Assembly: GCA_030704615.1 (NCBI GenBank)
Contig: CM060733.1
Span: 8,804,001-8,868,000, forward strand
DNA length: 64,000 bases
From: Takakia lepidozioides
Lineage: Eukaryota > Plantae > Bryophyta
Reading direction: 5' to 3'
Under the pieces are notes generated by a model that was given only the letters and a program-made list of their open reading frames with translations, was not told the DNA's origin and did not search any database. This document shows positions 30,801-53,472 of this stretch, piece by piece (position 1 is the first letter of the stretch; every line of letters begins with the position of its first letter). The translations under genes were made by a program, and so were the position numbers.

Positions 30801-33743
30801 AGTCTTGTCATTGACAAAATGACGTCGCTGAGCCCAATTCTGAATAGTGGAAGGCAACCCAAGGAGAAAATACATTTTAACCATACGATCCTTTTCTGCC
30901 GGGTCTATGATATTTTCAACAGCAGCAAATTTAAGATCCATGTAATACTTCCACAAGGATTCCCCAGGTTGGTAAGTCCTAGCTGAAAGCTTGGTAAAGC
31001 AATCCAGAGGCCTCTGAGGAGGTTTGAACAAGGTCTTTGCCCATTCCACCAGAGTTGCCCAGTTGATGCTGGGATCATCCATGACAGCTACATGCAGTAA
31101 GTCACGAGCTGGTCCCTTCATGCTCATCCTAAAGATCGTCATCTTGAAATTCTCAGGCACTCCATTGACACTAGCAATGACTTCAAACATCTGAAGATAT
31201 CTATCAAAGTCTTCTCCCATGGTATATTCTGGGTAAGGTTGAGTGGTCATCAAATGACACGGCAGGCTATGGTTGATGTGACCAGGGAGGACAGACCCAT
31301 GAGCAGGGCAACAGGGAATTATGGGAGCAACACTACCATGCACATATCCAACATTAGATGCAGAATTATAACTCATACTATTATTGCTGGCTGATCCTGT
31401 AGCAGCTGAAGCTGACAGACGTGACGCCACCGTGCCCATGGGGAGAGCAGGTGTTGCCACACTTGGCTGAGCAGCAGGGTTAGTCGACTGTAAGTGGGTT
31501 TGTGGCATTCCACTCATGGGAATAGTGGATGCCACTCCCATCGGTTGTGTTGATACAGATCTGGCTAGAGACAAGGTGTGGTGGCACCCCAGTCTGTGGA
31601 GCAGGGAGAGCCCCCACTGATTGGTCTGCGAAGGCAGGAGTCGGAGCAGCAGACACACTAGAGGGCCCTTGCATCATGACACTCCCACCTTGAACAACAC
31701 CATGCACGTTCAACACAGGAAGACTACCCACATGCATACCTGAATTTACAGGCAACAAATTCCCTCCCCCGAGAGTGTGACTAGGGAAATTCACAACAGA
31801 CAACACACTAGGACTCAAGTTAGCAACCTGGGCCGGCATACTGCTCGTAGTAGCCCAGACATCCAAACCAGACCCTTCGACCCCCTGAACATGAATAGGA
31901 TGGGAGGGCAGACCGCTTAATTCCCGAGCCAACGTAGGCTCGGTCCGTCTAGCCACCAAGGCCTCATCACGCCGATCATAAACAGAAAGGCCCTCAAGGG
32001 TGGCTATCCCAGACCCTTCATCAGTCAATGTAATACCAGTTGGGGACTCTACAACTGCTCCCATCGTCCCAGCATTCAAAAATCCATCATCATTCACCAT
32101 GAAATTACCTGCCTACAGGTTGTCCGATCCCTCATTCACTTCTACTACATTTTCGACCAGCGGCTCTCCTGAATTATTCATGGACCTCTGTCTTCCGGAT
32201 CTCAACCAAATAGTTATAGAATCACCTAGCATACAAGAAACGAGGTTGGATTGCAGGCATAACTTTTAAGCAGTACGGATATGGAGCGTGGGCCGAGCAC
32301 TTGGCGAGCTGTCTTCTGGAACCCAAGTGGAACAATACACCACCCTCAGCACCTTGTGTGACTGTAACTCGTAGATCCCCAACGCCAGCCACTCCCAACC
32401 GTCAGCTCCTTTGAGCCAAAAACCAATGCGGGTGGTGTCACCCTCACTCCAGGTGCGCGAAAGCATAGTCAGGTTTGAACAGTCACTCAATCTCTCAAAC
32501 GCACTCGGGCCAACCACTCATTGTGAAGCAAAGGTAGTATCCACACCCAAGACCACTAGATCAGACGACTGCACTATCAAGGCCCCACCCTTCAGACCAT
32601 CAATTAACTGTGAATAAGTAGGTGCCAAGGCGAAGGGCCGGAGCTGAAACCGCAGTGCCCTCAAGACCAAAGCCCCTGTGCCTTGTAACATTAACGACAA
32701 CCAACTTCGCCCTACCACACCAGGGCCATGATGAAGCTCCGCACTTCGAACACCAGAAAGAGGTAAATCCAAGCCAACTTCCAACTAGGTCAATTCACGA
32801 TGGTGCAGAAAACGCGACTTGATCGTCCTGGACGGTAGACGCTCTTCGTTGTGTAGCTCAAATTCGCGTTTAGCAAGCTGTTTGGCTCTGGATATCACCA
32901 CACCAGGCTCAAGCAAAGGTCGCGTGAACAGGGCCTCGTGATGACTGGTTAGTGCAGCAAGATCACCTCCGACAGCTCTCTCTAAACGCTCAAACCAAAG
33001 CTGATCTTCGTCACATATCTCACACAACAGATCATCCACTTCCTACGACAACTCAATATCTCTCTCTAACTCTGCTATTTGCTGCCTACTTTCGAAATAT
33101 TCAGGGTCTGGATCCACAAAGTTGTCAAAATTATAGTATTCCGGGTCACAGCTATCTAGAGAGCTGTCAGACTTCTCAAACCTTGGCGACCATGCCTCTG
33201 CCTCCCCCAGATCATCATAATCACTACCACCAGGAGAACCCAATGAAACAACAAGGGCTGGAACGCAAGCAGCAGGCTCAGGAAGTGACGACGCTGGCAA
33301 GGCAACACTGCCAGGCCGCGCGCTGTTGGTAGTGTTAGCAACAGCAAGAACGTCAGCAGGGTGAGAAACAATGGGAGGAGCAACAATAACAACACCAGCA
33401 GAATGAGAAGCGGCAGTAGGGTCAGCCTCTACACTAGGATTAGATTCAACAGCAAGTGCCACGCTAATCTGAAGAAATAGGCTCTCCCCCTCTCTGGGAG
33501 CTACACAAGACAAGTCACGAACAGTAGCCATCCCCTGCAATCATACCCCAACGCACATCATGAGACAGCAAAATCACCGTAGCAGGAGAAAATATGGCAA
33601 AGCGAGGAGCCGCCATTGATAACACGCATTAGCGAACCACTTAGGCAGTAGGATGTAGAGCAGATCCCGCAAAAAGACCTAACTGATCCTGACAGCGCGG
33701 GCAGGATCCACCAACGCCTAGAGTACCCGGCTTCTCTCCACCA
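27868..33743 (-). mobile_element. Gypsy element A, 5' internal part (gag, protease, dUTPase-like linker, RT, RNase H), degenerate
   Basis: gag ORFs 30531-32100; protease remnant CVVDT* near 30160; RT with CIDFRKLN, DLASGFWQ, YVDD (28268-29941); RNase H with TDASD, TDHLSL, RLARW (27868-28240). Confidence 0.9.
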
Positions 33744-34203
33744 TAAAACAAGCCTGAAGCATATACTTTTTTCCTCTCAAGAAGCAAGGTTGCACAACAA
33801 AGGGGCGAGCGGAAAGAGCAAGCAACACGCGAGATGAGGATCAAACACACGAATCAGGCACTAAGCAGCTCTCATCCAAAGCTTATACACCAAAATCACA
33901 TATACACTAACACCCGAGTACACCGCCCTGACCTTGTGTCAGGGCGCTATCTTTATACAAAAAGCCCTAGCCGTAGTGGCCCGCCGCGTGGCGAGGCATC
34001 ACAGGCCAAAGCCCACGGCGCTGTCTTGTGGCCCTAGATCTGATGAAGGGCCAGGATCGAGCCACCTACAAAAACTAACCCTAACCTAGATATCATTGTA
34101 ACGGTTTAACGGCTTCATACACCAAAAAAATATACTATGGATGTGTATCGCCGTTTTGGATGAAACGGGCTATTTTCAGGCTAAGCAAATATGGGGCTTT
34201 ACA
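33744..34203 (-). repeat. Gypsy A 5' LTR part (B'), followed by tRNA-type PBS TGGTGGAGAG; TSD AGCT at 34204-34207
   Basis: Reverse complement of 53008-53462 (roughly 95% identical by eye); starts TGTAAAGCC, ends GGCTTGTTTTA directly before TGG. Confidence 0.9.
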
Positions 34204-34690
34204 AGCTCGTGACACTTGGTCACATCTCCTCAGCCAATGTACGCACCCGATCATACATGGGCTTCATATCACGCGACACATCCAAGCAATCTGGCATCTC
34301 CATAAGCTCTTTCTAAACCGTTTTGAAACCAGATGGTTCTCGCTCATAAACGCTGGTACCTACCAAGGTCGACCACCCGACCACACTGTGCCACCCTGGC
34401 TGCTACCATGCATATGTACCCGATTACCATGCTCATGCCCTGCTAGGCTTTGCCTGGATATAATCCTTGTACAAGGCCTACCCATTAACACCCTACCCCC
34501 CACCTCACCATCTCCACAATTCACCATTCATTTCATTGAATTCACATTTTGCCACGATCGTTACCCCAATGACTCGATTTTAGAAAAATGTCAAAAATAT
34601 GCCCCGCTTATCCTTGCAATCCGAAAACTGGCCCATTAACCGTCATCACCGCCGGTACTTGAGGCGACATTCAATGACATACATGATAAC
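34204..34690 (+). mobile_element. RLE-type LINE C-terminal segment (CCHC knuckle half plus restriction-like endonuclease), inverted relative to the rest of the LINE
   Basis: ARDTWSHLLSQC completes YCPLCSTTHQ from the minus strand at 53473; RLCLDIIL...HFIEFTF...EKCQKY resembles the PD-(D/E)xK / KxxKY motif. Confidence 0.75.
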
Positions 34691-34814
34691 TTCAAAATGT
34701 TGTGATTCGGCTGCTGCACTCCGGTGTGACTATTGGCTTGAGCCTCAAGGCCTGATTTGGCTGTCCATGAGTAGTAACAAATGAGGTGAAGGTATCCCTG
34801 GCTGGAGATCATAG

Positions 34815-35430
34815 GTGCAGGCACTCCAGGCCACCTTCTCTAAAACCCATTGTCTACCTCTTATGTGCAGTGCAGTCATGGATGATCAGCTACATGTTGC
34901 GCTACTCCAGCGATGCCAATCAGGGCGTTCGCCAACTGGCCTTTCCGAGTCCTTGCGTAAACAAATTCTCTATCATGCGTCTACTCACCGTTTTATGGGT
35001 GATAAGCTTTTCAAGGAGTTCACTAGAGGGGGAGTGCCATGCTACTTGGAGGTGCCACCACGGAGCCAACTAAATGTTTTATTGGAGCGTTTCCATTGTT
35101 CCTTGTATGTAGGTCACCTTGGTATCAAGAAAACTGTGGCCCGCATCCAAGAGGTATACTATTGGCTGGGAATTCACCGCGACGTTACCGAGTTCATCTC
35201 TAAGTGTGAAGGTTGTCGTGCTAACATTGCTCTCCCTAGGGCCCGGATCTTGTATGTGAAGCTACCTTTGTGTTGCTACCGACTACTTGACTAAGTGGGT
35301 AGAAGTCCGGCCTTTGCGTTCCCAAGGCTAGTGATGTTGTAGCTGAGTTCTTCTTCAATGAGATCCTTATGCGGCATGGGTGTCCTCGGGAGATACTAAC
35401 GGATTAGGGCAAGGAGTTTTGTAACCAGCT
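34815..35430 (+). mobile_element. Gypsy A integrase, N-terminal part (HHCC zinc finger and start of core)
   Basis: HCSLYVGHLGIKKT...YYW...CEGC; HGCPREILTD*GKEFCNQL joins in frame to LTVICFNFGVKH at 47430. Confidence 0.88.
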
Positions 35431-35943
35431 TGTCGTGCGCATACGTATCGCTACACAACTACATCGCTGTCCAAACCACACCACACATATATGCACAATA
35501 AAGTAGTCTGCCAAAAAGACACACACTCTCAACACAAGAAATATGAAATCCATCGCTATCACTCTTTAAAAATAGAAGTCGAGCCAGGGGCACCCCAAGC
35601 TATGGGGACTCCACCCCACAACAACCTACACTCCCATCATAAGCACACTCAGATCTAAACGCATGAAGGAGCTCGGTCGCGCAGGCTCAACTCGAGAGAG
35701 ATGAGCTGCGCGACTGCCGCCCTCGTGAAGATAAGACGGGTCAGGTATCAAACTAAACTTGACACCTGATTTAACACTTGACCTAAATCCAAGTGTTAAA
35801 TACAAATAACTAGCTTTATTCTAGCTAGTTTCACACTGTGCTTATTTAACTTGACAGCTGTCGTGCGCATACGTATCGCTACACAACTACATCGCTGTCC
35901 AAACCACACCACACATATATGCACAATAAAGTAGTTTGCCACA
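35431..35943 (-). repeat. Element B 3' terminal block: A (35431-35512) + B (35513-35856) + gc + A (35859-35943), preceded on the sense strand by PPT AGGGGGGCGAT
   Basis: The A copies differ by 1 nt; the B copy matches 47082-47425 with 2 mismatches in 344 bp; palindrome GACAGCTGTC at 35853-35862. Confidence 0.93.
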
Positions 35944-36203
35944 ATCGCCCCCCTAGCTGGTGGATAGGTCCCTCTAACTCCAGATAGCTACAAGATGTAA
36001 TAGCCATAGCCATACTAAGTCCTCTATCACTGTCCCTATCGTGCTCAAACTCTATCAACCAAGAGGCCGGGTACAAGAGTAGCCCCATCGTTAGTCGCCG
36101 TCTTGCAATCTGTGAACTTGAGCCAAGATCTCGTGTGTTCAAGGTCTCCTAGTAGCTTGGCCTTGCATTTCTTGTTAACCTTCCATGGTTGTATCCACTC
36201 CCA

Positions 36204-37703
36204 TTATCCAATGCAATGTGGACATAACCAATCCCCATCCGGAACCATCTCAAGAGGTGGAGTCAAGCATCCCATATGCCAACTTCTAGAGCATCGATCA
36301 CACACCAGCATGGTGGCTGCCTCTTTAGCAGACCCACACAACATGCACCTCAAACCTGCAGATACCACTGCCAGGTTTGGGTCAATCCTGCCATCGACAT
36401 TCGGAAGGTGACGTGGCGCACAATTACGCACATGGTCCTTCCAAGTTATGCCATCCCGACCCTCCAAGACCAAGACACCTGAGGGCAAGACCTCTCGAAC
36501 CCTCAAAATAACACGTCCTGCAGTCACATCCAAGGTCGTAGGAGCAGTCTGCTGCAGATAGACATAGTCACTAGGGTTGAATCTCCGAACCCCAGGACGA
36601 TAGCCCCCACCACGTATGGTAGCATACCTCAACGTATCACGGTGTTGTGCAATGGCAAGGTTCTCGAAAGCCATGGGCATGACTTTCTTGAACAACTCTG
36701 CACGCTGCTCACATGCACGTGCCTACACGTCCGGATCGTCAAGATTAAGAACTGTAGCAGCTTCTCTGCGAATGGATGTAGGCAAATCCGGCTCTCGGCC
36801 AAAGAGAAGAAAGTATGGTGAGAAGGAGGCAAGTGATGCTTGCTTGCTGAACCTGTAGCCCATGGCTAACCAGGGTAACTGAAGGTCCCAATCTCCTAGG
36901 TGTCCCTTCTACAAGCCATACTTGCACAAACCCCTTTTTACTGTCTGAACAACTCTCTCTGCCAAGCCATCGGCCTCAGGATGATCCCGAGAAGTGGTGC
37001 GGTGGTCTATCAAGGCCTTGTCACACAAAGCCTGAAACTCCCCCAAGAACTCTCTCCCTTGGTCCGTGAGTACCTCAGCTGGAGCACCGAATCAGCTAAG
37101 CACACAATCCAAGAATGCATACGCAGCTCCCTCACTAGCCTTATCAGGCAATGGAACCAATTCAATCCACTTGGAGAAGTGCTCCACCATCACCAACACG
37201 TACTTGTTGTGGCGCATGGTCAGTGACAACGGCCCTGCGAAGTCAAGACTCCACCTGTAGCCCAATCCCATGATCGGAAGAGGGTGCAATTGTGGAGTAG
37301 GGGCGTTGAATGAAGCACGCACCCTGTCACACACCATGCACCTAGCCACAAATTGTTGCACCTCTGTGTGCATACCACGCCACCAATAATGCCCCTGCAG
37401 TAGACTATGAGTGCGTCGCACCCCAAAATGCCCCAACTCCTCATGGGCATGCCGCACTAACCGTGCCCGCTGTGTTGGGTGAGGCACAATCCTCACTCGA
37501 CCATCCTCCCACACTCGGAGCAGGTGTATCCCCTCCCACTTGAACCTCTTGGCTCGTTGTAGGATCCGATCCCTCTCCTTGGCAGTGGCTGCAGTGTCTC
37601 CAGTGCGGAGGTAGTCCAACACAACTGAATCCTCATGTATATCTTTGGCGCCACCTTGCTCATTGCTGGCCTCAGGGTCCTCAGACACTTGATCTACAGT
37701 CAT
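36204..37703 (-). pseudogene. Element B integrase (HHCC, DDE) with C-terminal PHD finger; in-frame stops
   Basis: HEELGHFG..CMVC; SLDFAG / LTDQGREF / GLAERVV; PHD CMLC..CDRC..WHMGCLTPPL..VPDGDWLCPHC at ~36207-36350. Confidence 0.92.
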
Positions 37704-37721
37704 CCCTGTTGCAGGTCCAAC

Positions 37722-39331
37722 CTAGCCTTCCGCTGCCAAGATACACAGAAATGCAGATGCATGCCATCCGGGCACCATCTCCTCGTCCGTCTCACCATGC
37801 CACCGAGCTCCAGTGTCATCCTGCTGGCTCGTGCATGGATTGCGACTCAACCCATCTGCATTGCGATTGACCAAACCCGGTCGATGCACCACCTGAAAGT
37901 CATACTCTTGAAGGATGAGTGCCCACCGTGCAAGCTTCCCCGTAAGCTTGTCTGACTCCATCAACCACTTGAGTGGTTGGTGATCCGTGACAAGGGTGAA
38001 GAGATTGCCGTATAGATAGCACCTGAAGTGTGCCACGGCCCACACTGCAGCTAAGCATTCTCCCTCATATGAGCTATACTTAGACTCTGCAGCATTGTTC
38101 GAGCGGCTAGCATAAGCCACTACGAACTCTCTTCCCTCATCATCCACCTGTGTGAGCACTGCTCCAAGCCCCAGCATGCTCCAATCTGTATGCAGCTGAA
38201 AAGGACGCCCCCTGATAGGTCGTCTCAAGATGGGCGCCGAGGTCAACCTCGCCTTGAGCTCTTGAAAAGCTTGTTCTTGCTCATCTTCCCACTTCCACTC
38301 CTGGTCCACCTTGGTCAGCTTGGTTAAGCCTTTGCAATGGCACTAAATCCCTTAACAAACCGTCTGTAATAGTTTGCTAACCCCATGAAAGCTCGAACTC
38401 GGCTCACATCCGTGGGGCGTGGAACCTGTGCAATGGACTCTACCTTAGTCTGTTGTACCCCCAATCATTCAGGATATATCATGTGACCCAGATACTCAAT
38501 CTGGTTGTGGAAAAACTTGCACTTGCCCGGATGTAACTTCAATCCGTGCGTCCTCAAGCGCTCAAATATCCCCTGAAGGTGTCTCTCATGCTCCTCCACC
38601 GTAGCACTAAAGATGATGATGTCATCTATGTAGCACCGAGCAAACTCCACCCCTGCTAGAATCCTGTCCATGACTCTTTGAAACTCAGCGGGAGCGTTTT
38701 TAAGCCCAAATGGTAAGAACCGCCACTGGTATAGGCAATCCTTCCCGTGCTCATTGATCCCCCAGAATGCCGTCTTTTGCTTATCCGCCTCCTTGATCGG
38801 CAACTGGTGATATCCGGATCGTAAATCCAACGTGCTAAAGACCTTGGAATGCCCAATGGCATCAAAGATCTCCTCTAGTGTCGGCATGGCATACCTATCG
38901 GACTTGGTCTGACGATTTACAGGCCGGTAATCACCGCACATACGTCTCTCCGTCCAATTGCCATAGACATCCTTCTTGGCTGGCATCATTGTGGCTGAAG
39001 CATACTCTGCATCAGAGAGCTCCACCAAACCTGCCTCCCAAAGATTTTGAGTTCTGATCTGAATCAAGGACCTCTCCATGTCACTGTATCTATAGGGTCT
39101 CCGAAAGATTGGCGTGTTAGTGGCCAATTCAATGCGAATCTCTTGACCCTTCAGTGCTCCCAAGTCTTTTAAACTGAAGGCAAAGCAATTCCTATAAGCC
39201 CTCAGGAACCGCCGTATACGTTGTCTCTCTCCTCCGGTGACAATGGGTCCAATGTCAGGCTCCCAATTGTCCTCCGTAACTGCAACCTTAAGTCCAGTGG
39301 GCTTAGAGGTAGAGGACGCGTCCCGTGGTTG
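37722..39331 (-). pseudogene. Element B reverse transcriptase and RNase H
   Basis: CGDYRPVN, DLRSGYHQ, PFGLKNAP, YIDD, TDWS, YSSYEGECLA, TDHQPL, NADGLSR. Confidence 0.93.
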
Positions 39332-40708
39332 CTATGCTGCAACCTCTTGAGCAGTACTCCCTTCCTGCTCAGTCAATGACAAGGCCTCATCCTGCCCCAT
39401 CATCTCATCATTAAGAACCTCCTCATCCCGAGAAGAATCCCCAACCTCATCCATCACAGCTGCCTTGGCTGCCAACTCCCTCTGAACCTCGAGTACCTCC
39501 CACGTGTGCCATGGATGTCTACACCCCGTGGTCCTCACCGGCTCGCCCCCACTCGCTGCCTGTACCGTCTCGGTAGGCAGAGAGACCGTCAAGGGAAGTG
39601 CACTCCGCACTCTACGTTGCTCAGCCATAGCCAAGCTGATAATCCAGGTCAAGCAATTGAGATCCATTGCTTGCCCCAACACCTGACGACGTGATGCCTC
39701 AGAAAGAGAAGGCACCGCTGTGGTCCCAGTGGAAAACCCCATAGCCCGCTCTCGCTCGTCGGCATTAGGCTCCACTAACTGTTGCATCTGAGCATCCCAT
39801 AGGAGGCCAGGTCCACCATCCCGAAAAGCATGGGATCCTGGGAAGCTGAGCAGTGTAGGTAATGCTGCTCGTGGTTGACCCACCCTGTTGACCACTGCCA
39901 AAGGCGAACGGTCATCGTGTCTCACACGTTGAGACTGCCTCCCTGTGTCCAAAATGCTGTCCACTATGAGGTGTGTTGGCCGCGGCACCCCATCAAATGC
40001 ACGCTTGAGCAGTGCGGGTGGCATCAAGTTAATCCACCATAGCCGTGGACGATGAGCCCGTGATCCCACTGCAGCTGCATCCAGCAGCACTGCTGACCCA
40101 AGCCACGACCGGACTTGATGCACACTGGCCATCACCCTGGCCCGAGAATCGCCCATCAGTGGCACATTCTCCAAGATGTATGCTGGTGATACAGCTTGAT
40201 GAAGCTGCAAGTGGCGCAAAATCCGCACCATCTCCCAAAACAGACCTGTCCTCGAGTCTCGCAATCCATTGCCATGCCCGGCTGATGAATGCCCTTGGCA
40301 GGGCCAACCTGCCACTACCAGATCAATGGAGCCAACCTGCTCCAAATCCGGCGCCCCCAGCAACGAAATGTCTGCTGGCAAGGCTTGTTGGTATCCACGA
40401 ACTGCAGACACTGGCAACAAAACAGGGTACTGCTGTACCAACTGAGCAACATGGCGCAGTGAGACGCGTCGTGCAGTCTCATCCCTCTCCACATACAGGT
40501 AACGCCTTACCCGCACACCTGCCTGTAGCACAGCAGCCAATCCGGTGCTGATCCCGCCAAACAAGTCCAGAAGGCAAATGCCTTCATCCGGATACTGCCA
40601 CACAATAGGTGTGGTATCCAATGGTGACAACTGAGGTGGTTCTGGTGCAATACCCGCACTCTCCTCCTCTCCTGACGGTACAAAATCCTCTACCCGGGCT
40701 TGTTGCAC
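39332..40708 (-). CDS. DNMT3-like C5 cytosine methyltransferase domain inside element B pol
   Basis: Motif I LLDLFGGISTG, IV GWPCQGHS, VI ILENV, VIII AHRPRLWWINL, IX ERERAMGF, X RQVLGQAM, in unpermuted order; same frame as the protease and RT ORFs, separated from each only by a single TAG. Confidence 0.92.
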   Translation of the reverse strand: MQQARVEDFVPSGEEESAGIAPEPPQLSPLDTTPIVWQYPDEGICLLDLFGGISTGLAAVLQAGVRVRRYLYVERDETARRVSLRHVAQLVQQYPVLLPVSAVRGYQQALPADISLLGAPDLEQVGSIDLVVAGWPCQGHSSAGHGNGLRDSRTGLFWEMVRILRHLQLHQAVSPAYILENVPLMGDSRARVMASVHQVRSWLGSAVLLDAAAVGSRAHRPRLWWINLMPPALLKRAFDGVPRPTHLIVDSILDTGRQSQRVRHDDRSPLAVVNRVGQPRAALPTLLSFPGSHAFRDGGPGLLWDAQMQQLVEPNADERERAMGFSTGTTAVPSLSEASRRQVLGQAMDLNCLTWIISLAMAEQRRVRSALPLTVSLPTETVQAASGGEPVRTTGCRHPWHTWEVLEVQRELAAKAAVMDEVGDSSRDEEVLNDEMMGQDEALSLTEQEGSTAQEVAA

Positions 40709-40726
40709 CCGTCGATCAACAACCTG

Positions 40727-43534
40727 CTACAAATCCTTGCTTGTACCCCACAATGGAGTGTGAGCAACCATGGCAGACAACTCCGCCATACCATGCATGT
40801 CATCCTGCTCTGCTGGAGGTGGCACATCTTCTGCATAGGCATTGCCTTCCAGCAACTCTCCAGGCCAACTAACTGCAGCTGTAAAGGCGGCTAGTGTTGG
40901 CATCTTGCCCCGTTGGGCAGCCGCAATACCCCCAATGAATGTCACAGGGAGCTGTGCACGATGACCATCCCCTGACTGCCATCCAGGCCTGTAGAATGCT
41001 GACTCCTCCCAAAAGTCCAGGGTGAAGCCCATGGGGTATAACACTGCCCCACCAACAAGGACATCGTAAGAGACCGCGTCTGTCACAAGGGCCTTGGCTC
41101 GCATGACTGAGCCATCGATAGGATGATCCGGCTGCAGTCTAATGGCCAACTGATGCCGTGTCATGCCCCGAGCCTGCTCTGATCCTCCCAGAGATGTCTG
41201 TATCTGGAAAGGACAAGGCTCCATATCCGCCTCCATGAGGCCCAAACCTGCAATAGCAGCTCTGCCCAACATCAGTGGTTGAGCTCCCGAGTCCAACAAG
41301 ACCCGCAGTGGCCGGTACTTCTTGCCTGCCGGACCACTCAAAGAGAAAATGCCATCCTGGTTGTCTAACAAGACAACTCCAGGTGTCACCATGGCGCGCT
41401 CAAAGGCTGGCCTAGCTGGCAGCTCCGTCAACCTGGCAGCTGCAACTTGCCATGGCGCAGCCGTGGCAGTCTTGACCCTCAAATCCGAGGATCCCTCTGC
41501 CACTACACCTTCCAGTAACTCCACAGAAGATGAAGTGACCTCCCCACTCTCACAGAGTGTTGCTGCTAGTCTGAACACTGCAGCTGGTCTTACCCCCGGC
41601 GTCGCAATCATGGTTGCCGAGAACAGTGGGGCTTGACACACAGAGGTGACTGCCCCCAACAACACACCGGCTGCACTAGCCTTGGCAGCAGGTGTCAGTG
41701 TTGTACGTGTAGCTCTCCCCAATGGCATAGAAACCTCCGCCTCGGTAACAGTCGGGCGAGAACTAGGTGCCATGGATGGCGTTGACACTGTCTCCGCCAA
41801 GGTGAATGACTGAGGCAGCCTCGCCTGACGGTTTGCCTCCCCAAGTTGTGGATCCAACTCCACCTCTGCACCTCGTGGCTCAGGAACTCGTGCTGCTCCT
41901 CGAGTCACGGCTGCATCAGACTCCACCTGCTCTAGTGGTAGTGCTGCTCCGCACATGAATCCCATGCCTCCCATATCTCCTCCCTTGGGAGCAGGATGTG
42001 GACCATCCCGCCTGGGAGCCGGTACCGCCTGAGCTATAGCCATTGCAGCGAGCCTCTGCTCTAGCTGCTGAAGTCAGTTGGCCATGCCTTGGTCAACACC
42101 CTGACCTCCGCGTCCGTGGCCATGTTGAGCTTGCCCTTGGCCTGCACCTCGTGCCCGACCACCTCGTCCTCTCTGGGCTGGTCCACCTCGCCCCGGCCAC
42201 CATTGTTCCCTTGGAACTGGCCTGGGCGCAACTCAGGATGCAAGTCATAACACTGGGCATCTCCATGCCCATACTTGCCACAATACCCACACTGCAACTG
42301 TGCAGGCGGTGTTGTGCCGGCCTTTTGCCACTCTCTGGGCAATCTCTCTTGATATGGGGTCCTCCACATGTCCAACATATCACCCCTGGTTGCTGTTGGC
42401 CTGCAAAAGATGCCACGGGCCTCTGCACCTGAGGTCCCCTGTAAGCTCCATGGAACTTGGGTTGGGAAACCTTGCCCCCTGACCACGCTGTTGGGCAGTC
42501 CCTTGTGCCTGTGGGCTGGCAGCTGCGCCTCGTGCATGCATGTCCTTGCCAAACCCAATGGTAACAACTCGCTCCTCCACCATGTTGAGCTCAATCCGCT
42601 CAGCTAGCAGAAACACATCTGCTAATGTGGGTTGGGCTGCTTGTAACAGGGTTGCATCCCGCACCCTTCTCCTGAGCTCCTTGTCCAAAATTCCATACCA
42701 GAACTGGATTGCCTGAGCTTCAGTAACCCCTTGGGTCACACTTATCAAGCGCCTCATACGAGTGTAGGCCTCTCGCAAGCTCTCACTGGGTTTGCGCTGG
42801 AAGTCTTGCAAACTTCGCAGCTTCTCTGTCCGTACACCTTGGCAGTTCCTCCGCAACTCCTGGAAGAACTCCACCACCGGGTTGAATCTAGGCACATGTG
42901 TTGTAGTCGTGGCAAGAGGAGTAGTAACACCTTTTGAACTGGTACCACCTCCAGAAGTACCAGCACTACTTGTTCCACTACTAGTGCTGGTAGTGGGAGA
43001 TATCGGTACTGATGCAGCAGCTACTGGTCGCGTCGTGCCTCGAGTAATGGAGACGTAGTCAGGTGACCAATACATCCTCCACTCCTCAATCTCTGCTTCA
43101 TGTCCTCGCCTGAACTCGTGGTAATCGTCCATAGGCGGGCCTTCCAAATGCTGGAATAGTCCCTTCCACGCCATGAATGGGGTGAATAGCTGTGGATTGC
43201 GCATCTGCTGCAAATCACACCAGCTGTCGAACTCCTGGATAAAGTCATCCAACTCGATTGTGCCCACAGCTCCAGAGTACCTACGAGGCCCCTTGGTAGC
43301 TCCATGCATCTCCTCCATGTCGTCCCACAACAATGGCGAATGAAACTGCACACATGTTGATGAAGCCTCCGAGTCTGTGTCTGACTCTGCACTAGTTGAG
43401 GGTGGCGGTGAAGGTGGTCTGAACCGAATACCTCGTCTTGTGAACCCACTCTCACTGTTACTGCCTGTAGCCGTACTCCCCTCAAAACCCTTGGGTAACT
43501 CCATGATGACACTCACAATGTGCACCTCCCCCAC
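40727..43534 (-). pseudogene. Element B gag (two CCHC-type knuckles, frameshifted) and aspartic protease
   Basis: ELDDFIQEFDSWCD, FQRKPSESLREAYTRM; CWTCGGPHIKRDC and CGYCGKYGHGDAQC in shifted frames; protease LLDSGAQ...DVLVG. Confidence 0.88.
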
Positions 43535-44054
43535 GTGACACTATAGGGCTCTAGTACTAATTCTAATAGTGACACGGGTGGACACCTGTTGCAGTTTAAG
43601 GGTCATATCCCAATGGCTCAGGGCACCTGCACCTGCATCCACCGCAAGAACTCCTATGGTTGGCTGGTCATCAACCCAGCCTCACCATAGAAGAAACACT
43701 GGTGGTCTTGCTGGTCATCACTCCAGCCTCACCACCGACAGCATACTCTAGGATTGACCGGTGATCAAATCCGGCCTAATCCCTATGAAAGCAAGCGCCC
43801 ACACAAAACCAACATGGCGCACAGTCAAGCATGCAGGTGTTGGGGGGGATTTAAACACAAGAAATCAAAACATCAACACCCCCACACCAAAATCCAGCTG
43901 CAATGCTGATCTTGCAGAATATCCCAGCCCAAAACCTCGGACTGACTGGCCTCCACCAAGAGAGGCTTTGGCAACTACGAGTACAAGGTAATGAAAATAG
44001 TGCAGAGATGGAGGGGAAGAATAGAAGCCCGCCCAAGCAAGATCTAATCCTGAT

Positions 44055-44648
44055 CTATGCTATCAACTTCCAGACTTCTCTCAAAGTGCCTCGCTCTGCA
44101 TGATGGTAAGGTGTAGGAGGTATATCTATGTCCAGAAACCTGCCACTAACTTTGTCCCAAGCTACAGTAGCTCGCTCTAACCAACCCTCCTCCTCTTTCT
44201 GCCAGGTAGAGACAAAGCAACACTCTGCTATCTCCCGCTCACTGAACACTAAAGAAAACAAAGGTAGGGTCTGATAGTCTCTCAACTCGAAAGCTTTGAG
44301 ACGGTTGCGGGTGTCCTCATTGCGAATGACTGCATCTCCTTCAAACAGAACAAACTTGTCCTCGCTAATGAACCCCCGCTCGTGGTTGCCTTGTGCAGAG
44401 CGTGTCCGGCTGCAACGCTGTCTGATTGCACAAACTTGTGTAGCTCCTGCTCCTCTGCTCCAGTACACCACAGCCTTGTGGCTGAACACCTTGGTCCCCG
44501 GGGCTGTCTTTGGCTGTGTTCCAAGCCTAGCTTTCACCCACTTTGGTATTTCACTTACAGCTGCAGAACTGCTGGCTCCAACAGAGTTCTGACTGTCCAA
44601 AGCGATATTGAGGCCCTCAACTGCTAATGCATGACCCCCAGTATGCAA
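44055..44648 (-). CDS. Unassigned 197-aa ORF in the 5' cargo region of element B
   Basis: Open frame on the element sense strand with protein-like composition; no recognised motif; non-ATG start. Confidence 0.3.
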   Translation of the reverse strand: MHTGGHALAVEGLNIALDSQNSVGASSSAAVSEIPKWVKARLGTQPKTAPGTKVFSHKAVVYWSRGAGATQVCAIRQRCSRTRSAQGNHERGFISEDKFVLFEGDAVIRNEDTRNRLKAFELRDYQTLPLFSLVFSEREIAECCFVSTWQKEEEGWLERATVAWDKVSGRFLDIDIPPTPYHHAERGTLREVWKLIA

Positions 44649-46541
44649 TCAACTCGTCCAACTGTTCTCCACTCAAATCAGTCTGAGTTCCTTGGGAAAC
44701 ATAAATCCTGTCCCCTTGTGTGCACATGCTAAGAGAAGAGACCTGCCCTTCAATTACGTCCTCATTTCCCCCAGCCATACAAGGAGGACATCCACAGATT
44801 TGTCTCTCAAATAGACCAGAACCTGTTCTAGAAACAGAATTGTGGATCTTTCATGGCACACTCACACTCTAAAAATTCCATAGATTTTTAGCAGAGTCCA
44901 AAAAACAAAAACAATTAGATAGGTAGATTTCCCCTTTCTGCAGCTATCCCCTCAAAAACTGAGTCAAACGGAGCTCATTTGACAAAGATATGACCAACCA
45001 GGCTCTTTAAACATAACACCATTTTTTTATAAAAAAAATTAATAAGACAAAACAAATACAAGGATTTTTTTTATTTTTTTTCAATACTTGTCTTGGTTCC
45101 CTGTTCCCTGGTTCCCTAAGAATTCCTTGGACTCATAAACTGCAAGGCCAATTGGTCCTGAAAGAAATGGCCTCACATTAATCACGCATTCAGTATGCTC
45201 AGGGGAGAGAGGCAAGGCGGACGCAGACGATGGCAGCGATGGCCAAGCCTGCGCAAGCAAGCAAGAACAAGGAAGTGGTGCGGGGTGTTGGCTAATTCGG
45301 CCGATCAAAGACCTGATCAAAGGGTTGCACATGAGCAGCTTGCATGCTCGTCAATCTCCAAAGCCATGCAGCAGAGATGCCCGTCAGCTCCTACCAGCTC
45401 CTGGTTCTGCTCAGTCCTCACGGCTACCTACTCTTTGTCGTACACAACACTCAAAACCAGAAATCACCCTCGCTCCCCTTCCGGCTCACGAGGTTCAAGC
45501 TGGTTCCACTCACACAGGATGTCCAGTGAATGCCTGGAAGTCTAGTACACCACAACACTCGGCTTAGAACAAGCACCTCTAGGGAAGCAGTGAAGTTGCG
45601 ATTTCCTACTTATCTCTTTAGTCCGCCTCTCATCCTCACATCAGCATTTCGCACGCAACGATTCGCAGATGGCAACCTCTCTACCATCCTCCACGCTACA
45701 GCGGAGTTGCAGCAAACTGGTCTGCACCACAAGGAAAGAGGTCTGCATCTGGGGCATTGGAAGCCCTATCTTCCGGACTCACTTGCAATGGCCCTGACTT
45801 GTGCAGATCACCCAACCAGGCACATACGGGTATGTCCCAGCTGCAAATCTTCTTTCTCAAATCGTCATGGTCAAAACCTTCCCTAGAGCTAGAACACTTT
45901 GCGCATTTCAGTCAATGTGAACTTCATCCCCCTTCTTCAACAGCTCTTGAACACCTTCAGTTGGACTATCACGATGTGGGAAATTAACTATATTATCTTG
46001 CACACCTCCAAAAGGACGAGGTCCGATTGAACATCACACTTACTGTCAACGAATGTGGTGCACAGTCAGGAACACTTGAAGTGCACGTGGTGCGCAATCC
46101 CTCTCTGGCTTTTTGTGTTTCCTTTCATGGACGTCTGTTGTGGAGCAGGAAACCATGTCCGTGAAGTACTTCCACTACTTGTGTCCACACCACCATGTCC
46201 AGCCAGCTTGATGCTAATGATCGCCGTCTCTCTCATCCGACCCTCAGCAGCCTGTCGTGCTCACCCCCTCCACGGGAACTTCATTCGATAGAGAGAGATC
46301 TGTTTTCCTGAATCACATAGCTGCGCCTCTAAAACCGTATCCTATGTTGATTGCTTATTCTTGCATAAAGCGCAGGAAACGCAGCCCGCAGTTCACAAGC
46401 ACTAAGCTCGCCACATAAACAGAATCAGTTTCAAGAAACATGACATGGGAGATACAAGACACTGGTCTTCGATTCAAATGTCGGGCCCTGCTTTTTCTTT
46501 GCTCAAAGGAGCTCGAGCAGAGGAAGAAACGAAAACCCACT

Positions 46542-46810
46542 TTACCGCTGCTGGTGCTGGATTCCAATGAGCACCTTTAACACGTCTTGCATGGAGGGGC
46601 GTCTATCAGGCACCTCGTGTGTGCAAAGCATGGCCACATCCATCAGCTGTAGCAGCTGCTTGTCAATACCTATGGTCTTCAGCAGTTTCACATCAAGAAC
46701 TTGTCTGGCCAGCTTTGGCTTCGCCAATGCTTGCCGCACCCACTGTGAGCTGTTCATGCCCTTACTGACCAGAACGAAGGCTGCTTCCCCGCAGTATAGC
46801 TCCGTCCTGC
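46542..46810 (-). pseudogene. Captured C-terminal fragment of a receptor-like protein kinase
   Basis: QWVRQAL...QVLDVKL...LLQLMDVAMLCTHEVPDRRPSMQDVLKVL matches the RLK/Pelle subdomain X-XI pattern. Confidence 0.75.
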
Positions 46811-47068
46811 CCCTGCGGCCTTATGCCAGAACCAACGCTATCCTTACCAGTGGAAAGACACCAGTTCTTTGCCCCTGCTTGACATGCAGCCTGCCTCCAT
46901 GGACCATCTATATAAACAGAAACCAGAGATGATCGAAACCTGCATGTTTTTTTTTTTTTTTTTCTTAAAACTTCTCAAACTAAGCACTACTTTCGCACAG
47001 GTAATCATACAAGTGCTAACCCTCAACTCCTACCTTGCACTCACAGGTAAGAGCTCATCTCTCTCGAA

Positions 47069-47425
47069 TGATAAACAAGCTAAAAAGACACACACTCTCA
47101 ACACAAGAAATATGAAATCCATCGCTATCACTCTTTAAAAATAGAAGTCGAGCCAGGGGCACCCCAAGCTATGGGGACTCCACCCCACAACAACCTACAC
47201 TCCCATCATAAGCACACTCAGATCTAAACGCATGAAGGAGCTCGGTCGCGCAGGCTCAACTCGAGAGAGATGAGCTGCGCGACTGCCGCTCTCGTGAAGA
47301 TAAGACGGGTCAGGTGTCAAACTAAACTTGACACCTGATTTAACACTTGACCTAAATCCAAGTGTTAAATACAAATAACTAGCTTTATTCTAGCTAGTTT
47401 CACACTGTGCTTATTTAACTTGACA
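47069..47425 (-). repeat. Element B 5' LTR part (B'; TGTCAAG..TTTATCA) with hairpin array; putative self-priming PBS at 47052-47067
   Basis: 47052-47067 is the exact 16-nt reverse complement of 47261-47276; no TGG tRNA PBS follows the terminal CA. Confidence 0.85.
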
Positions 47426-48165
47426 AGCTCCTCACGGTGATTTGCTTCAACTTCGGTGTCAAACATTCCACCACCGCCCCATACCATCCCCAGACCAATG
47501 GCCTTACGAAACGCTTCAACCAAACTCTTTGCCGAATGTTGGAGAAGAATGGCGCACTTATCGGGGAGTGGGATACCTTTCTTCCCCCGATTCTCTTTGC
47601 TTATCGCAGCGCCGTGCATGCTAGCACCAAGAAGACTCCTTTTGAGTTACTGTATGGTCGCAAGAGTGTTTCTCCTTTGCATTCTACCCCTCTTATCTCT
47701 ACTGTTGCTGATCCGGTTGATCTTGAGACCTTTGTTGAGGATCTTCATGCTCGACATGCGGTGTCTATCCATGATGCCAAGATGAACATTGGTAAGGCTC
47801 AACTAACCCAGGCCCGTAATTTTAACAAGCGTGTCAAGTATTCTAACATGTTTCAGGTGGGACAGACCGTGAGCGTTCGATTACAGCATGACAAACATGC
47901 ATGCAAATCTAAGCTCAAGATCGACGGTCCATACTTGATCTATCATATTTTACGCGGGCGACGTGCTCTTCTTCTTCCCCAAGGCTCTAATACTGAAGTG
48001 CGGGATGAACCTGTTTCCTTGACAGACTTGGTGCATTCCGAGCTAGTTTTTGATCTTACATGTATCAATGTGGAGGGGCACACGGTGGGGTGATGTCTTG
48101 ATCTTCTTAGCCGATCTACTTCAGCTTAATCTACTTCTCTTCTCAGCGGCTTAGTCTTAGTTTGC
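47426..48165 (+). mobile_element. Gypsy A integrase, C-terminal part
   Basis: TTAPYHPQTNGLTKRFNQTL (catalytic E changed to K), TPFELLYGR, GPY motif. Confidence 0.88.
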
Positions 48166-50129
48166 TGTCGTGCGCATACATATCGCTACACAACTACATC
48201 GCTGTCCAAAACCACACAACACATGTGCACGCCACACACTAGTATATCACTAGTCCACCACTAGTCTAGCCACTAGTCCAACCACTAGGCTACAATTAGT
48301 CAATCACTAGGCTGCCACTATGCTGCCCACTATGGCAGTCACTAGTCCATACAATCGCCCCCCTAGCTGGTGCTTAGGTCCCTCTAAGTCCGGGTAGCCA
48401 CAAGATGTGATAGTGACCATAGCCTCACTTAGTCCTCTACCACTGTCCCTACTACACTCAAACTCAATAGATCAAGAGGCCGGGTACAAGAGTTGTCCCA
48501 TCGTTAGTCGCCGTCTGGCAACCTGTGAACTTGAGCCTGAGATCTTGGGTATTGACTCCTATGAGCTTGGCCTCCCATGTCTTGTGAGCTGCCACTAGTC
48601 ATATCCACTGCCACTATCCCAAGCAGTGTGGACATAACCAATCTCCATCAGGAACCCTCTCAAGAGGTGGTGTCAAGCATCCCATGTGCCAACCTCTTGA
48701 GCATCGATCACACACCAGCATAGTGGTGGCACCACGAGCATGCCCACATAGCATGCAACGCAATCCTGCAGATACCACTGCAAGGTTGGGATCTATCCTC
48801 CCATCCATATGTGGAAGGTGACATGGCGCACAATTACGTACATGGTCTTTCCATACCATGCCATCTTGACCCTCCAGAACCCTCGTGGCTCAGGAACTCG
48901 TGTTGCTCCTCGAGTCACGGCTGCAGCAGACTCCACCTGCACTAGTGGTAGTGCTGCTCCGCACATGAATCCCATGCCTCCCGCCTGAACTCATGGTAAT
49001 CATCCATAGGCGGCCCCTCAAGGTGCTGAAACAGCCCCTTCCATGCCATGAAAAGTGTAAATAGTTGTGGATTGCGCATTTGCTGCAAATCACACCAACT
49101 ATCAAACTCTTGGATAAAATCATCCAACTCGATGATGCCCACCGCCCTAGAGTACCTTCGTGGCCCCTTGGTAGCTCCATACATCTCCTCCATTGTGTCC
49201 CACAACAATGGCAAGAAAACAACTTGCACCGCCGGTATGAGTCCTCCTGATTCACAATCCGAATCAGAACCTTCCGTAGAAGACACAGGAGGTGAAGGTG
49301 GCCTAAACCGCACACCTCGTCTCGTGTACCCACTAGTATCGCTAGTGCTCAAACCGACACTGTCCCCAGCAACTAGTGGCACCTCCGTGTTGACACTCAA
49401 CCGGTCATGAACATGTCTCTAACCCCCTCTCCACAAGGTAACCGGGTAGAGAACCTGTTGCGGCTTATGGTTTGGAATACTAAGTTCCTAACATAGCCTA
49501 CACCTGTACCTGCATCCACCGCAAGCACTCCTATGGTTGGCTGGTCATCACCTCCAACCTCACCACAGGAGAAACAATGATGGTCTGGCTAGTCATCACC
49601 CCAGCCTCACCATCGACAGCATGCTCTAGGACTGGCCGGTGATCAAATCCGGACCAATCACCTATAAAAACAAGTGCCCACACAAAACTAGCATGGCGCA
49701 CAGTCAAGCATGCAGGTATGGAGGGGATCCAAACACAAGAAATCAGAACGACAACTCCCCCACACCTAAAACAACTCCACGGTGTTGCTAATGCAAGGAC
49801 ACCCCAGCCCAAACCCGGACTGACTCTTGCCTCCACCTACGGGAAGGTCTTGGCCTAATGAGAGGGTGGAAACTACGAGGAAGAGAAACTAAAGCAATGC
49901 CTAACCCCAACATGCCCTCATCCCAACACTTTTCCTCTCATCTCTTCCCTCACTTGCATGACCATGGGACTATCATGAAGATACCCCTCAAACCGCCCTC
50001 CACGAGCTTCAAAATTCGGCCTTCAAGACCACATGCCGGTCCTTAGGCAGTCCACCAATCCACGAGTCAGCACAGGCCGTCCACAGGTCAACACGGGCCG
50101 CCACAGACCAGCACAGGCCCACACAGCTC

Positions 50130-51055
50130 ACTGGTCATAGCCGTCACAGCCCCACACAGGCCACAGCCTGTCACAGCCCTACACAGTCACAGGGTCACAG
50201 CCCCACAGGCCGCAGCCTGTCACAGCCCCCACGGCCACAGGTCACAGCCTGACACAGCCCATCACAAAGGTCACAGGGTCACAGCCCCAAAGGCCACAGC
50301 CTGTCATTGCCCCTCACAACCCCATAGGCCACAAGGCACAGCCTGTCACAACCCCTCACAGCCCGTCATAGCCCCACAGGCCACAGGGCACAGCTTGTTA
50401 CAGCCCCTCATAGCCCGTCACAGCCCAATAGGCCACTGGGCGCAGCCCGTCACAGCCCGTCACAGCCCCACAGGCCACATGACACAGCCTGTCACAGCCC
50501 CTCACAGCCTGACACAGCCCCACAGGCCACATGGCTTGGCCTGTCACAGCCCTACACAGGTCACAGGGGTCACAGCCCCAAAGGCCACAGCCCCTCACAG
50601 CTCGTCACAGCCCCACAGGCCACAGGGCACAGCCCACCACAGTCTGTCACAGCCTGTCACAACCCGTCACAGCCCCACAGGCCACAGGGCACAGCCTATC
50701 ACAGCCCCTCACAGCCCGTCACAGCCCCACAGGCCACTGGGCACAGCCTGTCACAGCCCACCACAGCCCGTCACAGCCCATCACAGCGTGTCGCAGCCCG
50801 TCACAGCCCCACAGGCCACAGGGCATAGCCTGTCACAGCCCCTCATAGCCCGTCACAGCCCCATAGGCCATAGGGCACAGCCTGTCACAGCCCCTCACAG
50901 CCCCACAGGCCACTGGGCACAGCCTGTCACAGCCCGCCACAGCCTGTCACAACCCCTCACAGCCCGTCACAGCCCCACAGGCCACATGGCACAGCCTGTC
51001 AAAGTCCCTCACAGCCCATCATAGCGTGTCACAGCCCGTCACAGCCCCACAGACC
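50130..51055. repeat. Minisatellite array built from gtcacagccc / cacaggcca units inside element C
   Basis: Dozens of degenerate ~10-nt units visible directly. Confidence 0.95.
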
Positions 51056-51499
51056 ACTCATGACAGTTTAGCCATTTCTCCAAGGGGTTTAGCCACGCCA
51101 AGCTAGGGTTTGTGTCTCTTGGACTCTAGGCTTCTTTGCACCGAGCTATGGCGGCTGTGAAGAAATCAGCAAGTATTCTTGCTCTTTCGGCTCCCACACA
51201 CCACCAATAGTAGCCCTAAGCCATGAGGAAGATGGTTGCCACAAACCAAGCCTTCTTTCTCATTTAGACTCCCCAAACACGCCACTAAACTCAATGGCAA
51301 ACAACCAAGCCTTGCTGGTTTCCAGCCTTTGTGAGCACTCATTCAAGCGTTTCCCTTGGCCATAGCATCTGTCTTAGAGCCTATTCCTACACCTGCCACT
51401 TCAAGAGCCATGCTCTATCGTAGGCTTGAGGTTGAAACCCCAACTCAGAACACGCTCTACAAGTGTCGGACTGTCACATAAGAGCAGATCAGCGGGAGA

Positions 51500-51920
51500 T
51501 CAGCCCCTTACCTTCTCTTCTAGTTCTCTTAAGCTTGAAAACAAAAGCCCAATGGACTGAAGGCATGCTCCACACATGCCCCACTCTCACCACCAGAGAA
51601 TCAGCCCCTTTGCTTTCTTTCTTGCACCCACCAACCTGAAAATACACGCTTCAGCGAGCTGGAAGCATGCTCCACACATGCCCTACAGGGAAACCAGCCC
51701 CTTCCTTCTTTTCTTGCACTCCCAAACCTGAAAGTACAAGCCTTCAACAGGCTGAAAGCATGCTCCACACATGCATTGCTCTCACATAAGGGAAGTCAGC
51801 CCTTCCCTCTTCCTTGCTTGCCCTCCAAGCTTGAAGATGGAAGCTTCAATGAGCTGAATACATGCTCCACACATGCAACCTCTTCACTCAAGAGGTATCA
51901 GCCCCCTATCTTGGCTCCTT
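51500..51920. repeat. Four diverged ~95-100 bp tandem units with core catgctccacacatgc
   Basis: Core seen at ~51563, 51665, 51758 and 51861. Confidence 0.85.
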
Positions 51921-52995: not shown

Positions 52996-53472
52996 AGGCT
53001 TCAGAAATGTAAAGCCCCATATTTGTTTAGCCTGAAAATAGCCCGTTTCATCCAAAACGGCGATACACATCCATAGTATATATTTTTGGCGTATGAAGCC
53101 GTTAAACCGTTACAATGATATCTAGGGTTAGTTTTTGTAGGTGGTTCGATCCTGGCTCTTCATCAGATCTAGGGCCACAAGACAGCGCCGTGGGCTTTGG
53201 CCTGTGATGCCTCGCCACGCGGCGGGCCACTACGGCTAGGGCTTTTTGTATAAAGACGGTGCCCTGATACAAGGTCGGGGCAGTGTACTCGGGTGTTAGT
53301 ATATATGTGATTTTGGTGTACAAGCTTTGGATGAGAGCTGCTTAGTGCCTGATTTGTGTGTTTGATCCTCCGCTCGCGCGTTGCTTGCTCTTTCCACTCG
53401 CCCCTTTGTTGTGCAATCTTGCTTCTTGAGAGGAAATGAGTATATGCTTCAGGCTTGTTTTAAGGCTTTACA
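52996..53472 (+). repeat. Gypsy A 3' terminal block: A' (52996-53005) + aa + B' (53008-53462) + A' (53463-53472); PPT GGGGGG at 52989-52994; TSD AGCT at 53473-53476
   Basis: AGGCTTCAGA-aa-TGTAAAGCC ... GGCTTGTTTTA-AGGCTTTACA. Confidence 0.82.

Follow-up and report, generated by a model that had tools for sequence, protein, structure and literature searches.

Why does a retrotransposon with a retroviral-type integrase end in the middle of its own long terminal repeat (LTR)? The question is raised by an element on the minus strand of a 64,000-nucleotide stretch of the moss Takakia lepidozioides (GenBank assembly GCA_030704615.1, contig CM060733.1, positions 8,804,001 to 8,868,000), which we refer to as the window. 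An earlier note read positions 35427-47429 as a Gypsy element with a circularly permuted LTR, apparently integrated as a two-LTR circle through an attachment (att) site inside the LTR. By its domains and repeat layout, we assign the element to the streptophyte Gypsy-DNMT3 lineage, whose native integrated form is X-PBS-internal-PPT-Y-GC-X/Y. Here, X and Y are the two parts of the LTR as named on the sense (minus) strand (B' and A' in the earlier note), PBS is the primer binding site, PPT is the polypurine tract, and a slash marks a joint or an insertion boundary. The family spans a streptophyte alga (Klebsormidium nitens), liverworts, and mosses.

Layout of the window element

The inserted unit is exactly 35431-47425 and reads X1-PBS-internal-PPT-Y1-GC-X2/Y2 in sense order; repeat finding, BLAST, and direct reading place every piece of the layout where the earlier note had it. 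By repeat finding and BLAST, the X copies (35510-35856 and 47079-47425) share 99.1% identity across 347 bp, and the Y copies (35431-35516 and 35859-35944) share ~98% identity across 86 bp. Direct reading gives AGCT/TGTCGTG... at the left end (35427-35437) and ...CTTGACA/AGCT at the right end (47419-47429). The termini are TGTC...GACA, and they are flanked by a perfect 4-bp target site duplication (TSD), AGCT, at 35427-35430 and 47426-47429. Once rejoined, the flanks form a single uninterrupted plus-strand integrase open reading frame (ORF) of another element, and because they fuse into one reading frame the insertion is a clean one. Chance is ruled out as the source of the arrangement by the 98-99% identity of the repeats and by the recurrence of the layout in independent assemblies.

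The 3' end of the element is Y2 (35431-35512, minus strand), a terminal partial LTR unit that is 98-99% identical to 35859-35940 and whose sense end reads ...CGCACGACA. It abuts X2 (35513-35856, minus strand) at 35512/35513, as directly read; X2 is 99.1% identical to 47079-47425 and provides part of U3 together with R and U5 of the complete 3' LTR. Within this LTR lies a palindromic junction (35853-35862) composed of GACA (35853-35856), GC (35857-35858), and TGTC (35859-35862), which was read directly, is also present in the relatives, and is the proposed att site of the integrase. Y1 (35859-35944, minus strand), identified by repeat comparison and direct reading, forms the start of U3 and is located directly 3' of the PPT (35945-35963, minus strand; sense CCACCAGCTAGGGGGGCGA), which is kept in all relatives examined. 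On the 5' side, the PBS (47052-47067, minus strand) lies immediately 3' of U5, and X1 (47069-47425, minus strand), the 5' terminal unit recognized by repeat comparison, starts in sense with TGTCAAG and would hold the RNA start near 47276. Y2, X2, Y1, and X1 correspond to A1, B1, A2, and B2 in the labelling of the earlier note.

The PBS reported in the earlier note is present, and its sequence suggests self-priming. In eight copies, including that in the window, the segment directly after X1 has an exact complement of 10-19 nt within X, at a depth of about 150-180 nt in bryophytes and of ~350 nt in K. nitens, whose X is longer. In the window, 47052-47067 is the exact 16-nt complement of 47261-47276. 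The paired segments covary between copies (TCTAAG/CTTAGA, TCCAAG/CTTGGA, TTCAAG/CTTGAA, and TTCGAG/CTCGAA); the 16-mer of the window and the 19-mer of K. nitens each differ from these. A tRNA-type PBS was rejected: no tRNA was detected in the window by ARAGORN, X is not followed by TGG, and covarying self-complementarity is seen instead. An RNA 5' end complementary to the PBS is characteristic of self-priming as in Tf1/Sushi and Tcn1 (PMC6317226), and the PBS here is probably a site of the Tf1 type. As in those elements, the predicted RNA 5' end is complementary to a U5-adjacent PBS and there is no tRNA-type PBS; the comparison is one of features, and the Tf1/Sushi and Tcn1 elements differ in having canonical LTRs and a chromodomain, whereas a PHD finger is found here.

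The product of reverse transcription follows from these priming sites. In every copy, Y is directly preceded by a conserved polypurine tract (CCACCAGYTAGGGGGGCG-like); because the PPT abuts Y and the PBS abuts X and pairs within it, reverse transcription must make Y-GC-X. Judged from these sites, the reverse-transcribed LTR is Y-GC-X, in agreement with the A'-gc-B' of the earlier note. The self-priming complementarity would put the RNA start within X, so that Y, GC, and the beginning of X would make up U3 and what remains of X would be R-U5.

A Gypsy lineage in an alga, liverworts, and mosses

The coding capacity of the element is that of a Ty3/Gypsy retrotransposon. We ran Pfam on stop-free segments and ORFs, covering all long sense-strand segments of the window copy and part of the short ones. 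The order protease-reverse transcriptase-RNase H-integrase is present on the minus strand, and likewise in a Marchantia copy (L081) and a K. nitens copy (L085). Reverse transcriptase (RT) and RNase H occupy 37725-39331 (minus strand; RVT_1 2.5e-33, RT_RNaseH 5e-37). The integrase and its C-terminal PHD finger (36207-37721, minus strand; Pfam and translation) comprise an Integrase_H2C2 match (1.5e-16) and an rve core that is matched in two pieces; the region carries in-frame stops in this copy. Translation shows an intact DDE triad, D (LDFAGP), D (LTDQGREF), and E (ADGLAER). A C-5 cytosine DNA methyltransferase domain (39335-40726, minus strand; DNA_methylase PF00145, 3.3e-13) lies inside the polyprotein, upstream of RT and in the same frame, as it does in L081 and L085. 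Weak aspartyl-protease and gag matches precede it (40730-43540, minus strand), with Pfam E values of 0.01-0.05 that are below the curated cut-offs. The window copy is decayed, with in-frame stops and one frameshift. The earlier note's assignment to Gypsy with a DDE integrase is borne out, and no match to a tyrosine recombinase (Phage_integrase) was found in the scanned stop-free segments and ORFs of the window copy, L081, and L085.

A protein search with the window methyltransferase piece gives its best relatives in liverworts (Calypogeia fissa, 71%; Marchantia; Riccia) and Sphagnum mosses. KnitGypsy-Dnmt3 of K. nitens (de Mendoza et al. 2018, PMC5890265) is characterized by a DNA methyltransferase within its Gypsy polyprotein, and the legend of Fig. 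4c in that paper states that its repeats are DIRS-like and its domains Gypsy. The K. nitens copy L085 has zf-CCHC, protease, DNA_methylase, RT, RNase H, integrase, and PHD domains by Pfam, which identifies it as the published element type. It shares with the window copy the order X-int-Y-GC-X/Y, a 4-bp TSD, and a putative self-priming PBS, and its U5/U3 joint is exact. The domain content of the window element (gag, protease, C5-DNA methyltransferase, RT, RNase H, DDE integrase, and PHD) and its repeat layout are those of KnitGypsy-Dnmt3; it differs in its host and in its ends, which are TGTC/GACA as against TGCC/GGCA in K. nitens. The window copy is only ~40-45% identical to K. nitens in RT-integrase, and K. 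nitens proteins match the Marchantia RT-integrase-PHD protein with E about 1e-237 and 41% identity in a pairwise protein search. The supposition in the earlier note that the layout was undescribed does not hold: the DIRS-like layout was noted in 2018. In PMC5890265, the layout is mentioned in one figure legend only, without TSD, att site, PBS/PPT analysis, or mechanism. Our full-text literature search returned no other paper that names KnitGypsy-Dnmt3 or offers a mechanism for its repeat layout; one 2026 preprint refers to streptophyte Gypsy-DNMT3 in passing.

Further copies were fetched around homologous proteins from Calypogeia, Marchantia, Riccia, Sphagnum, and K. nitens, the K. nitens homologues being recovered with a 1043-aa RT-integrase-PHD ORF as the query. 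A metagenome scan with the integrase C-terminus yielded 72 loci, which are mostly Sphagnum-like. This gave 12 copies with both ends, about 35 3' ends (identical loci counted once), and 13 5' ends. All 12 complete copies terminate at the TG../..CA of the palindrome and all have 4-bp TSDs, 10 perfect and 2 with one mismatch. Three integrated forms were found. The form X...Y-GC-X/Y is that of the window element (AGCT) and, with the TSDs in brackets, of Calypogeia L003 (AATG), Marchantia L081 (GGTT), L082 (CCCT), and L083 (CCGG), and K. nitens L085 (TCTT). A longer form, X...YXYXY, occurs in Calypogeia L001 (AGGT). The repeat-less form, X...Y, is that of Marchantia L008 (AATT) and L084 (GATT), of the two copies whose TSD has one mismatch (Sphagnum L004 and moss contig L022), and of a second element in the window (48166-52760, minus strand), an internally deleted relative with TGTC...GACA ends and the TSD TTGC at 48162-48165 and 52761-52764 (BLAST and direct reading).

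The 3' ends (n = 35) comprise 20 repeat-less ends (PPT-Y/flank), 14 of the type Y-NN-X/Y, and one YXYXY. All 13 known 5' ends read flank/X-PBS. Canonical ends, named in the earlier note as evidence that would speak against it, number 0 of ~35 at the 3' side (PPT-Y-NN-X/flank; window, Calypogeia, Marchantia, Riccia, Sphagnum-like contigs, and K. nitens) and 0 of 13 at the 5' side. Misassembly, which it also named, is excluded because the layout recurs alike in long-read chromosome assemblies, older scaffolds, and metagenome contigs. With the RNA start placed within X, X-int-Y copies would be devoid of a 3' R and unable to replicate, and replication would be confined to copies that have X downstream of Y.

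Some loci enter these counts in part or need comment. A Marchantia draft scaffold (L002) was left out, its 3' end falling in an assembly gap; its 88-bp flanking repeat was dismissed as assembly redundancy. Only the 5' end was counted for Calypogeia L005, whose 3' part (12749-14534) is inverted by a secondary rearrangement, and only the 3' ends for L006 and L007, where the 5' end is not within 10 kb. In Sphagnum L004, a 71% direct repeat was considered as diverged LTRs and rejected, as it belongs to an unrelated repeat family present in many moss contigs; the true X is at 6359-6696. One moss copy (L011/L013, 1577-2411) has an unrelated repeat of ~830 bp inserted in Y2, which is also found in L004, L023, L024, L035, L042, L046, and L058 in both orientations and is probably a separate small transposable element. 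Marchantia L083 (8213-10208) and L084 (4778-6781) have ~1 kb tandem duplications near the 5' end, and that of L084 includes flank.

The spacer of the palindromic junction, whose constancy the earlier note listed as support, is GC or a transition derivative of it in all copies examined. GC occurs in the window copy, at two junctions of L001, in Riccia, in K. nitens, in three Marchantia copies, and in two moss copies, and the remaining copies have AC, GT, or AT. Inverted symmetry is kept despite sequence change, with GACA-GC-TGTC in bryophytes and GGCA-GC-TGCC in K. nitens. At integrated ends, the TSD directly adjoins TG and CA and the spacer is lost, as the earlier note had read for the window copy.

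At the X/Y joint, the end of U5 meets the start of U3. Most moss copies and those of Calypogeia, Marchantia, and K. nitens have an exact joint, whereas L043 and L011 each have one additional G and L020 has 19 nt of filler. When compared with the copies next to the PBS and the PPT, the window joint lacks ~10-13 nt at the U5 end and ~4 nt at the U3 start, ~14 to 17 nt in total, which is close to the losses of ~13 and ~3 nt given in the earlier note. The copies at large have abutted ends with occasional small indels, as that note predicted. The indels are confined to the joint and the rest of X and Y is gap-free, which points to end joining at each insertion rather than to later mutation. From this pattern, the X/Y joint looks like the product of end joining carried out anew for each insertion.

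From reverse transcript to insertion

An att site inside the LTR, a DDE integrase, and joined outer ends are well supported. We consider it probable that they are linked in one process, in which cDNA ends are joined and the DDE integrase cleaves at the LTR-internal palindrome. The RNA would start about 150 nt inside X1 and its 5' end would fold back onto the PBS for Tf1-type self-priming, and the PPT would prime the plus strand to give an ordinary linear cDNA with two Y-GC-X LTRs. The integrase would ignore the outer LTR ends and act on the CA-GC-TG palindrome inside the LTR. Cleavage after CA on both strands would leave recessed CA-3'OH ends with 2-nt 5' overhangs. This geometry is that of processed retroviral ends, and insertion of such ends would give TG...CA termini, a lost spacer, and a 4-bp TSD. 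The outer ends (U5 end and U3 start) would be joined, in a two-LTR circle or by equivalent end joining, and the left-LTR junction opened. Opening a two-LTR circle at the PBS-adjacent junction would yield the replication-competent X-int-Y-GC-X/Y. X-int-Y, presumably a dead end, would come from the opening of a one-LTR circle or from a linear cDNA of which the X end of the left LTR and the Y end of the right LTR are used.

Abutted ends a few bp apart, as in the circle or dimer junctions of IS3-, IS30-, and IS256-family elements, are a reactive DDE substrate. These are DNA transposons without reverse transcription, and the resemblance is functional only. For retroviruses, Panganiban and Temin reportedly put forward an older circle-junction model of integration. 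Retroviral integrases cleave palindromic two-LTR junctions (PMC1180852, PMC1905944, and PMC4372172); in prototype foamy virus and human immunodeficiency virus type 1, as proposed here, a CA-spacer-TG palindrome of abutted integrase ends is cut symmetrically to give integration-competent ends. The retroviral palindrome arises only on circularization, has a 4-bp spacer, and serves a side route, whereas that of Gypsy-DNMT3 is built into every LTR, has a 2-bp spacer, and is apparently the sole route.

Several points weigh against this account, most of all against a free two-LTR circle. The RNA start and a polyadenylation site in X2 are predicted positions, and the free circle is a putative substrate suggested by the joint. 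The extra unit is on the 3' side in 7/7 complete copies and at 0/13 5' ends (P about 0.008). This counts against a symmetric circle, because two identical junctions predict X/Y-GC-X-int-Y and X-int-Y-GC-X/Y at 1:1. One Calypogeia copy (L001) has 2.5 units and needs an extra step. The repeat-less form makes up 20/35 3' ends, which would mean that much of the output is dead on arrival. Decay of YXY copies to the repeat-less form by Y-Y recombination was considered and is unsupported, with median moss terminal branches of 0.041 versus 0.045 (p = 0.86), although the test is weak. Since repeat-less moss copies are not older than YXY copies, they look like direct products, and if so the missing 5' form is not attributable to a general loss of dead copies. 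It is possible that the left LTR becomes double-stranded well before the right, so that its junction alone is available early. Of the circle integration proposed in the earlier note, the att site, the joined ends, and the lineage-wide occurrence stand. The free two-LTR circle is putative: the 3'-side asymmetry counts against it, and a one-LTR circle or a linear cDNA could equally give the repeat-less majority.

The same asymmetry makes a linear, left-LTR-first route a serious rival, although we judge it unlikely. Here, without any free circle, the intasome would form on the left-LTR palindrome of a linear (perhaps incomplete) cDNA, cut it on both strands, and insert the CA ends, and the host would join the left-over U5 end to the U3 start carried by the short tail on the left; in an X-int-Y variant, the left-LTR X end would be used with the right-LTR Y end. 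If the left LTR is double-stranded first, as the standard order of strand displacement has it, this accounts for the 3'-side position in 7/7 copies, and it also accounts for the abundance of X-int-Y and for the end-joining-like variation at the X/Y joint. It would require a chromosome break to be healed at each productive insertion, and it departs from the circle model solely in the order of joining and cutting.

The resemblance to DIRS-order elements suggests a second rival, a templated route in which the internal Y-GC-X would serve as a splint like DIRS-1's internal complementary region (ICR), and integration would follow once a mostly single-stranded cDNA had had its ends restored and joined on it. 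PAT-like, Ngaro, and other DIRS-order elements have the same split direct repeats, A1-internal-B1-A2-B2, with an internal junction equal to the joined termini and the extra unit on the 3' side, a fixed asymmetry identical to that seen here. The repeat layout matches PAT and Ngaro (PMC5890265), and DIRS-1 requires its ICR and uses linear single-stranded cDNA (PMC7192593). Those elements have a tyrosine recombinase and no TSD, whereas the copies studied here have TG...CA ends and a DDE integrase with 4-bp TSDs, and no tyrosine recombinase in the scanned segments. In addition, the Y boundary is a conserved PPT and the X boundary a covarying PBS, so that ordinary LTR-type strand transfers already explain Y-GC-X, and the joint indels resemble end joining rather than templated copying. 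We regard the templated route as improbable.

We give virtually no credence to the idea that a canonical LTR element was misassembled, secondarily rearranged, or hit by a nested insertion, or that a solo unit lies by chance beside a truncated element. The window is a nest of elements and the relatives L005, L036, and L078 are rearranged, but independent assemblies of five genera, and metagenome contigs as well, show the layout with matching TSDs, the GC spacer is constant, and 0 canonical copies were seen among those examined.

In terms of class, the elements have the Ty3/Gypsy Pol order, an H2C2 DDE integrase with a short TSD, a U5-adjacent PBS, and a U3-adjacent PPT, and lack two identical complete terminal LTRs that end at the PPT- and PBS-defined positions. 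They share the split direct repeats of the DIRS order but not its TSD-free insertion, and its tyrosine recombinase was not found in the segments and ORFs scanned. Both traits of Gypsy-DNMT3, a methyltransferase within the polyprotein and DIRS-like repeats with Gypsy domains, are present.

Accessory features and implications

An in-frame TAG separates the gag-protease-methyltransferase frame from the RT-RNase H-integrase-PHD frame at 39332-39334 (minus strand) in the window copy, and it is at the same place in Marchantia (L081, 13835-13837) and Calypogeia (L001, 12386-12388), i.e., in three genera. The contexts in the window, L081, and L001 are TAG CAA CCA, TAG CAA CAA, and TAG CAA TCA, respectively. 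UAG-CAR-YYA is a stop-codon readthrough context, and the conserved TAG, which resembles it, may serve programmed readthrough. The PHD finger ends the integrase in the window (36207-36350, minus strand) and in L081 (residues 994-1038 of the ORF at 13844-16975). Chromoviruses have a chromodomain at this position of the integrase, and the PHD finger may be a chromatin reader that targets integration. A protein search with the 1043-aa ORF finds RT-integrase-PHD relatives in Closterium, K. nitens, and Haematococcus. Between the PBS and gag lies a long leader of ~2.6-3.5 kb (window 43541-47051, minus strand; L081 7123-9796), in which we found no long ORF and no Pfam match. L081 (Marchantia polymorpha AP019869.1, 10223128-10246964) is a near-intact copy with X copies 99% identical, Y copies 100% identical, and ORFs of 1346 and 1043 aa that are split by the TAG alone; it is a candidate active element judging by its sequence.

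The window elements are nested in a plus-strand Gypsy-type integrase gene that spans 33741-35430, 47430-48165, and 52765-53465, with H2C2 at 34815-35294 and rve_3 at 47437-48093. This host is bracketed by 463-bp inverted repeats (33741-34203 and 53465-53008; 94% identical), and no clear TSD was seen at its limits. The second window element contains ~1 kb of degenerate tandem repeats (50092-51065; copies 72-76% identical) in a GC-rich region with strong GC skew. Upstream of the nest, an ORF at 30531-31658 (minus strand) with a weak PNMA/gag-like match is probably part of another retroelement.

To our knowledge, all characterized LTR retrotransposons and retroviruses are taken to integrate the outer ends of linear cDNA, and circles are deemed dead ends. 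The anatomy of this lineage is hard to fit to outer-end integration, as the integrase sites lie side by side within the LTR and the outer ends occur joined to each other. By a modest margin of belief, we favour the broader view that an ancient streptophyte Ty3/Gypsy lineage moved its integrase site from the LTR ends to a built-in palindrome, CA-GC-TG, that resembles a circle junction and lies inside the LTR, and that its productive transposition needs the joining of cDNA ends and opening at this site. It would be a natural, obligate version of the circle-junction model, since abandoned for retroviruses, a DDE counterpart of the DIRS-order split repeats, and a possible stepping stone to them. 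If true, the lineage would offer a natural case of a retroviral-type integrase whose productive substrate is end-joined or circular cDNA, and it would account for the origin of split direct repeats in the absence of a tyrosine recombinase. Standard LTR finders, which seek two terminal LTRs, would then misannotate or miss such elements in bryophyte and algal genomes. Marchantia polymorpha has near-intact copies and is genetically tractable, which makes the question directly testable there.

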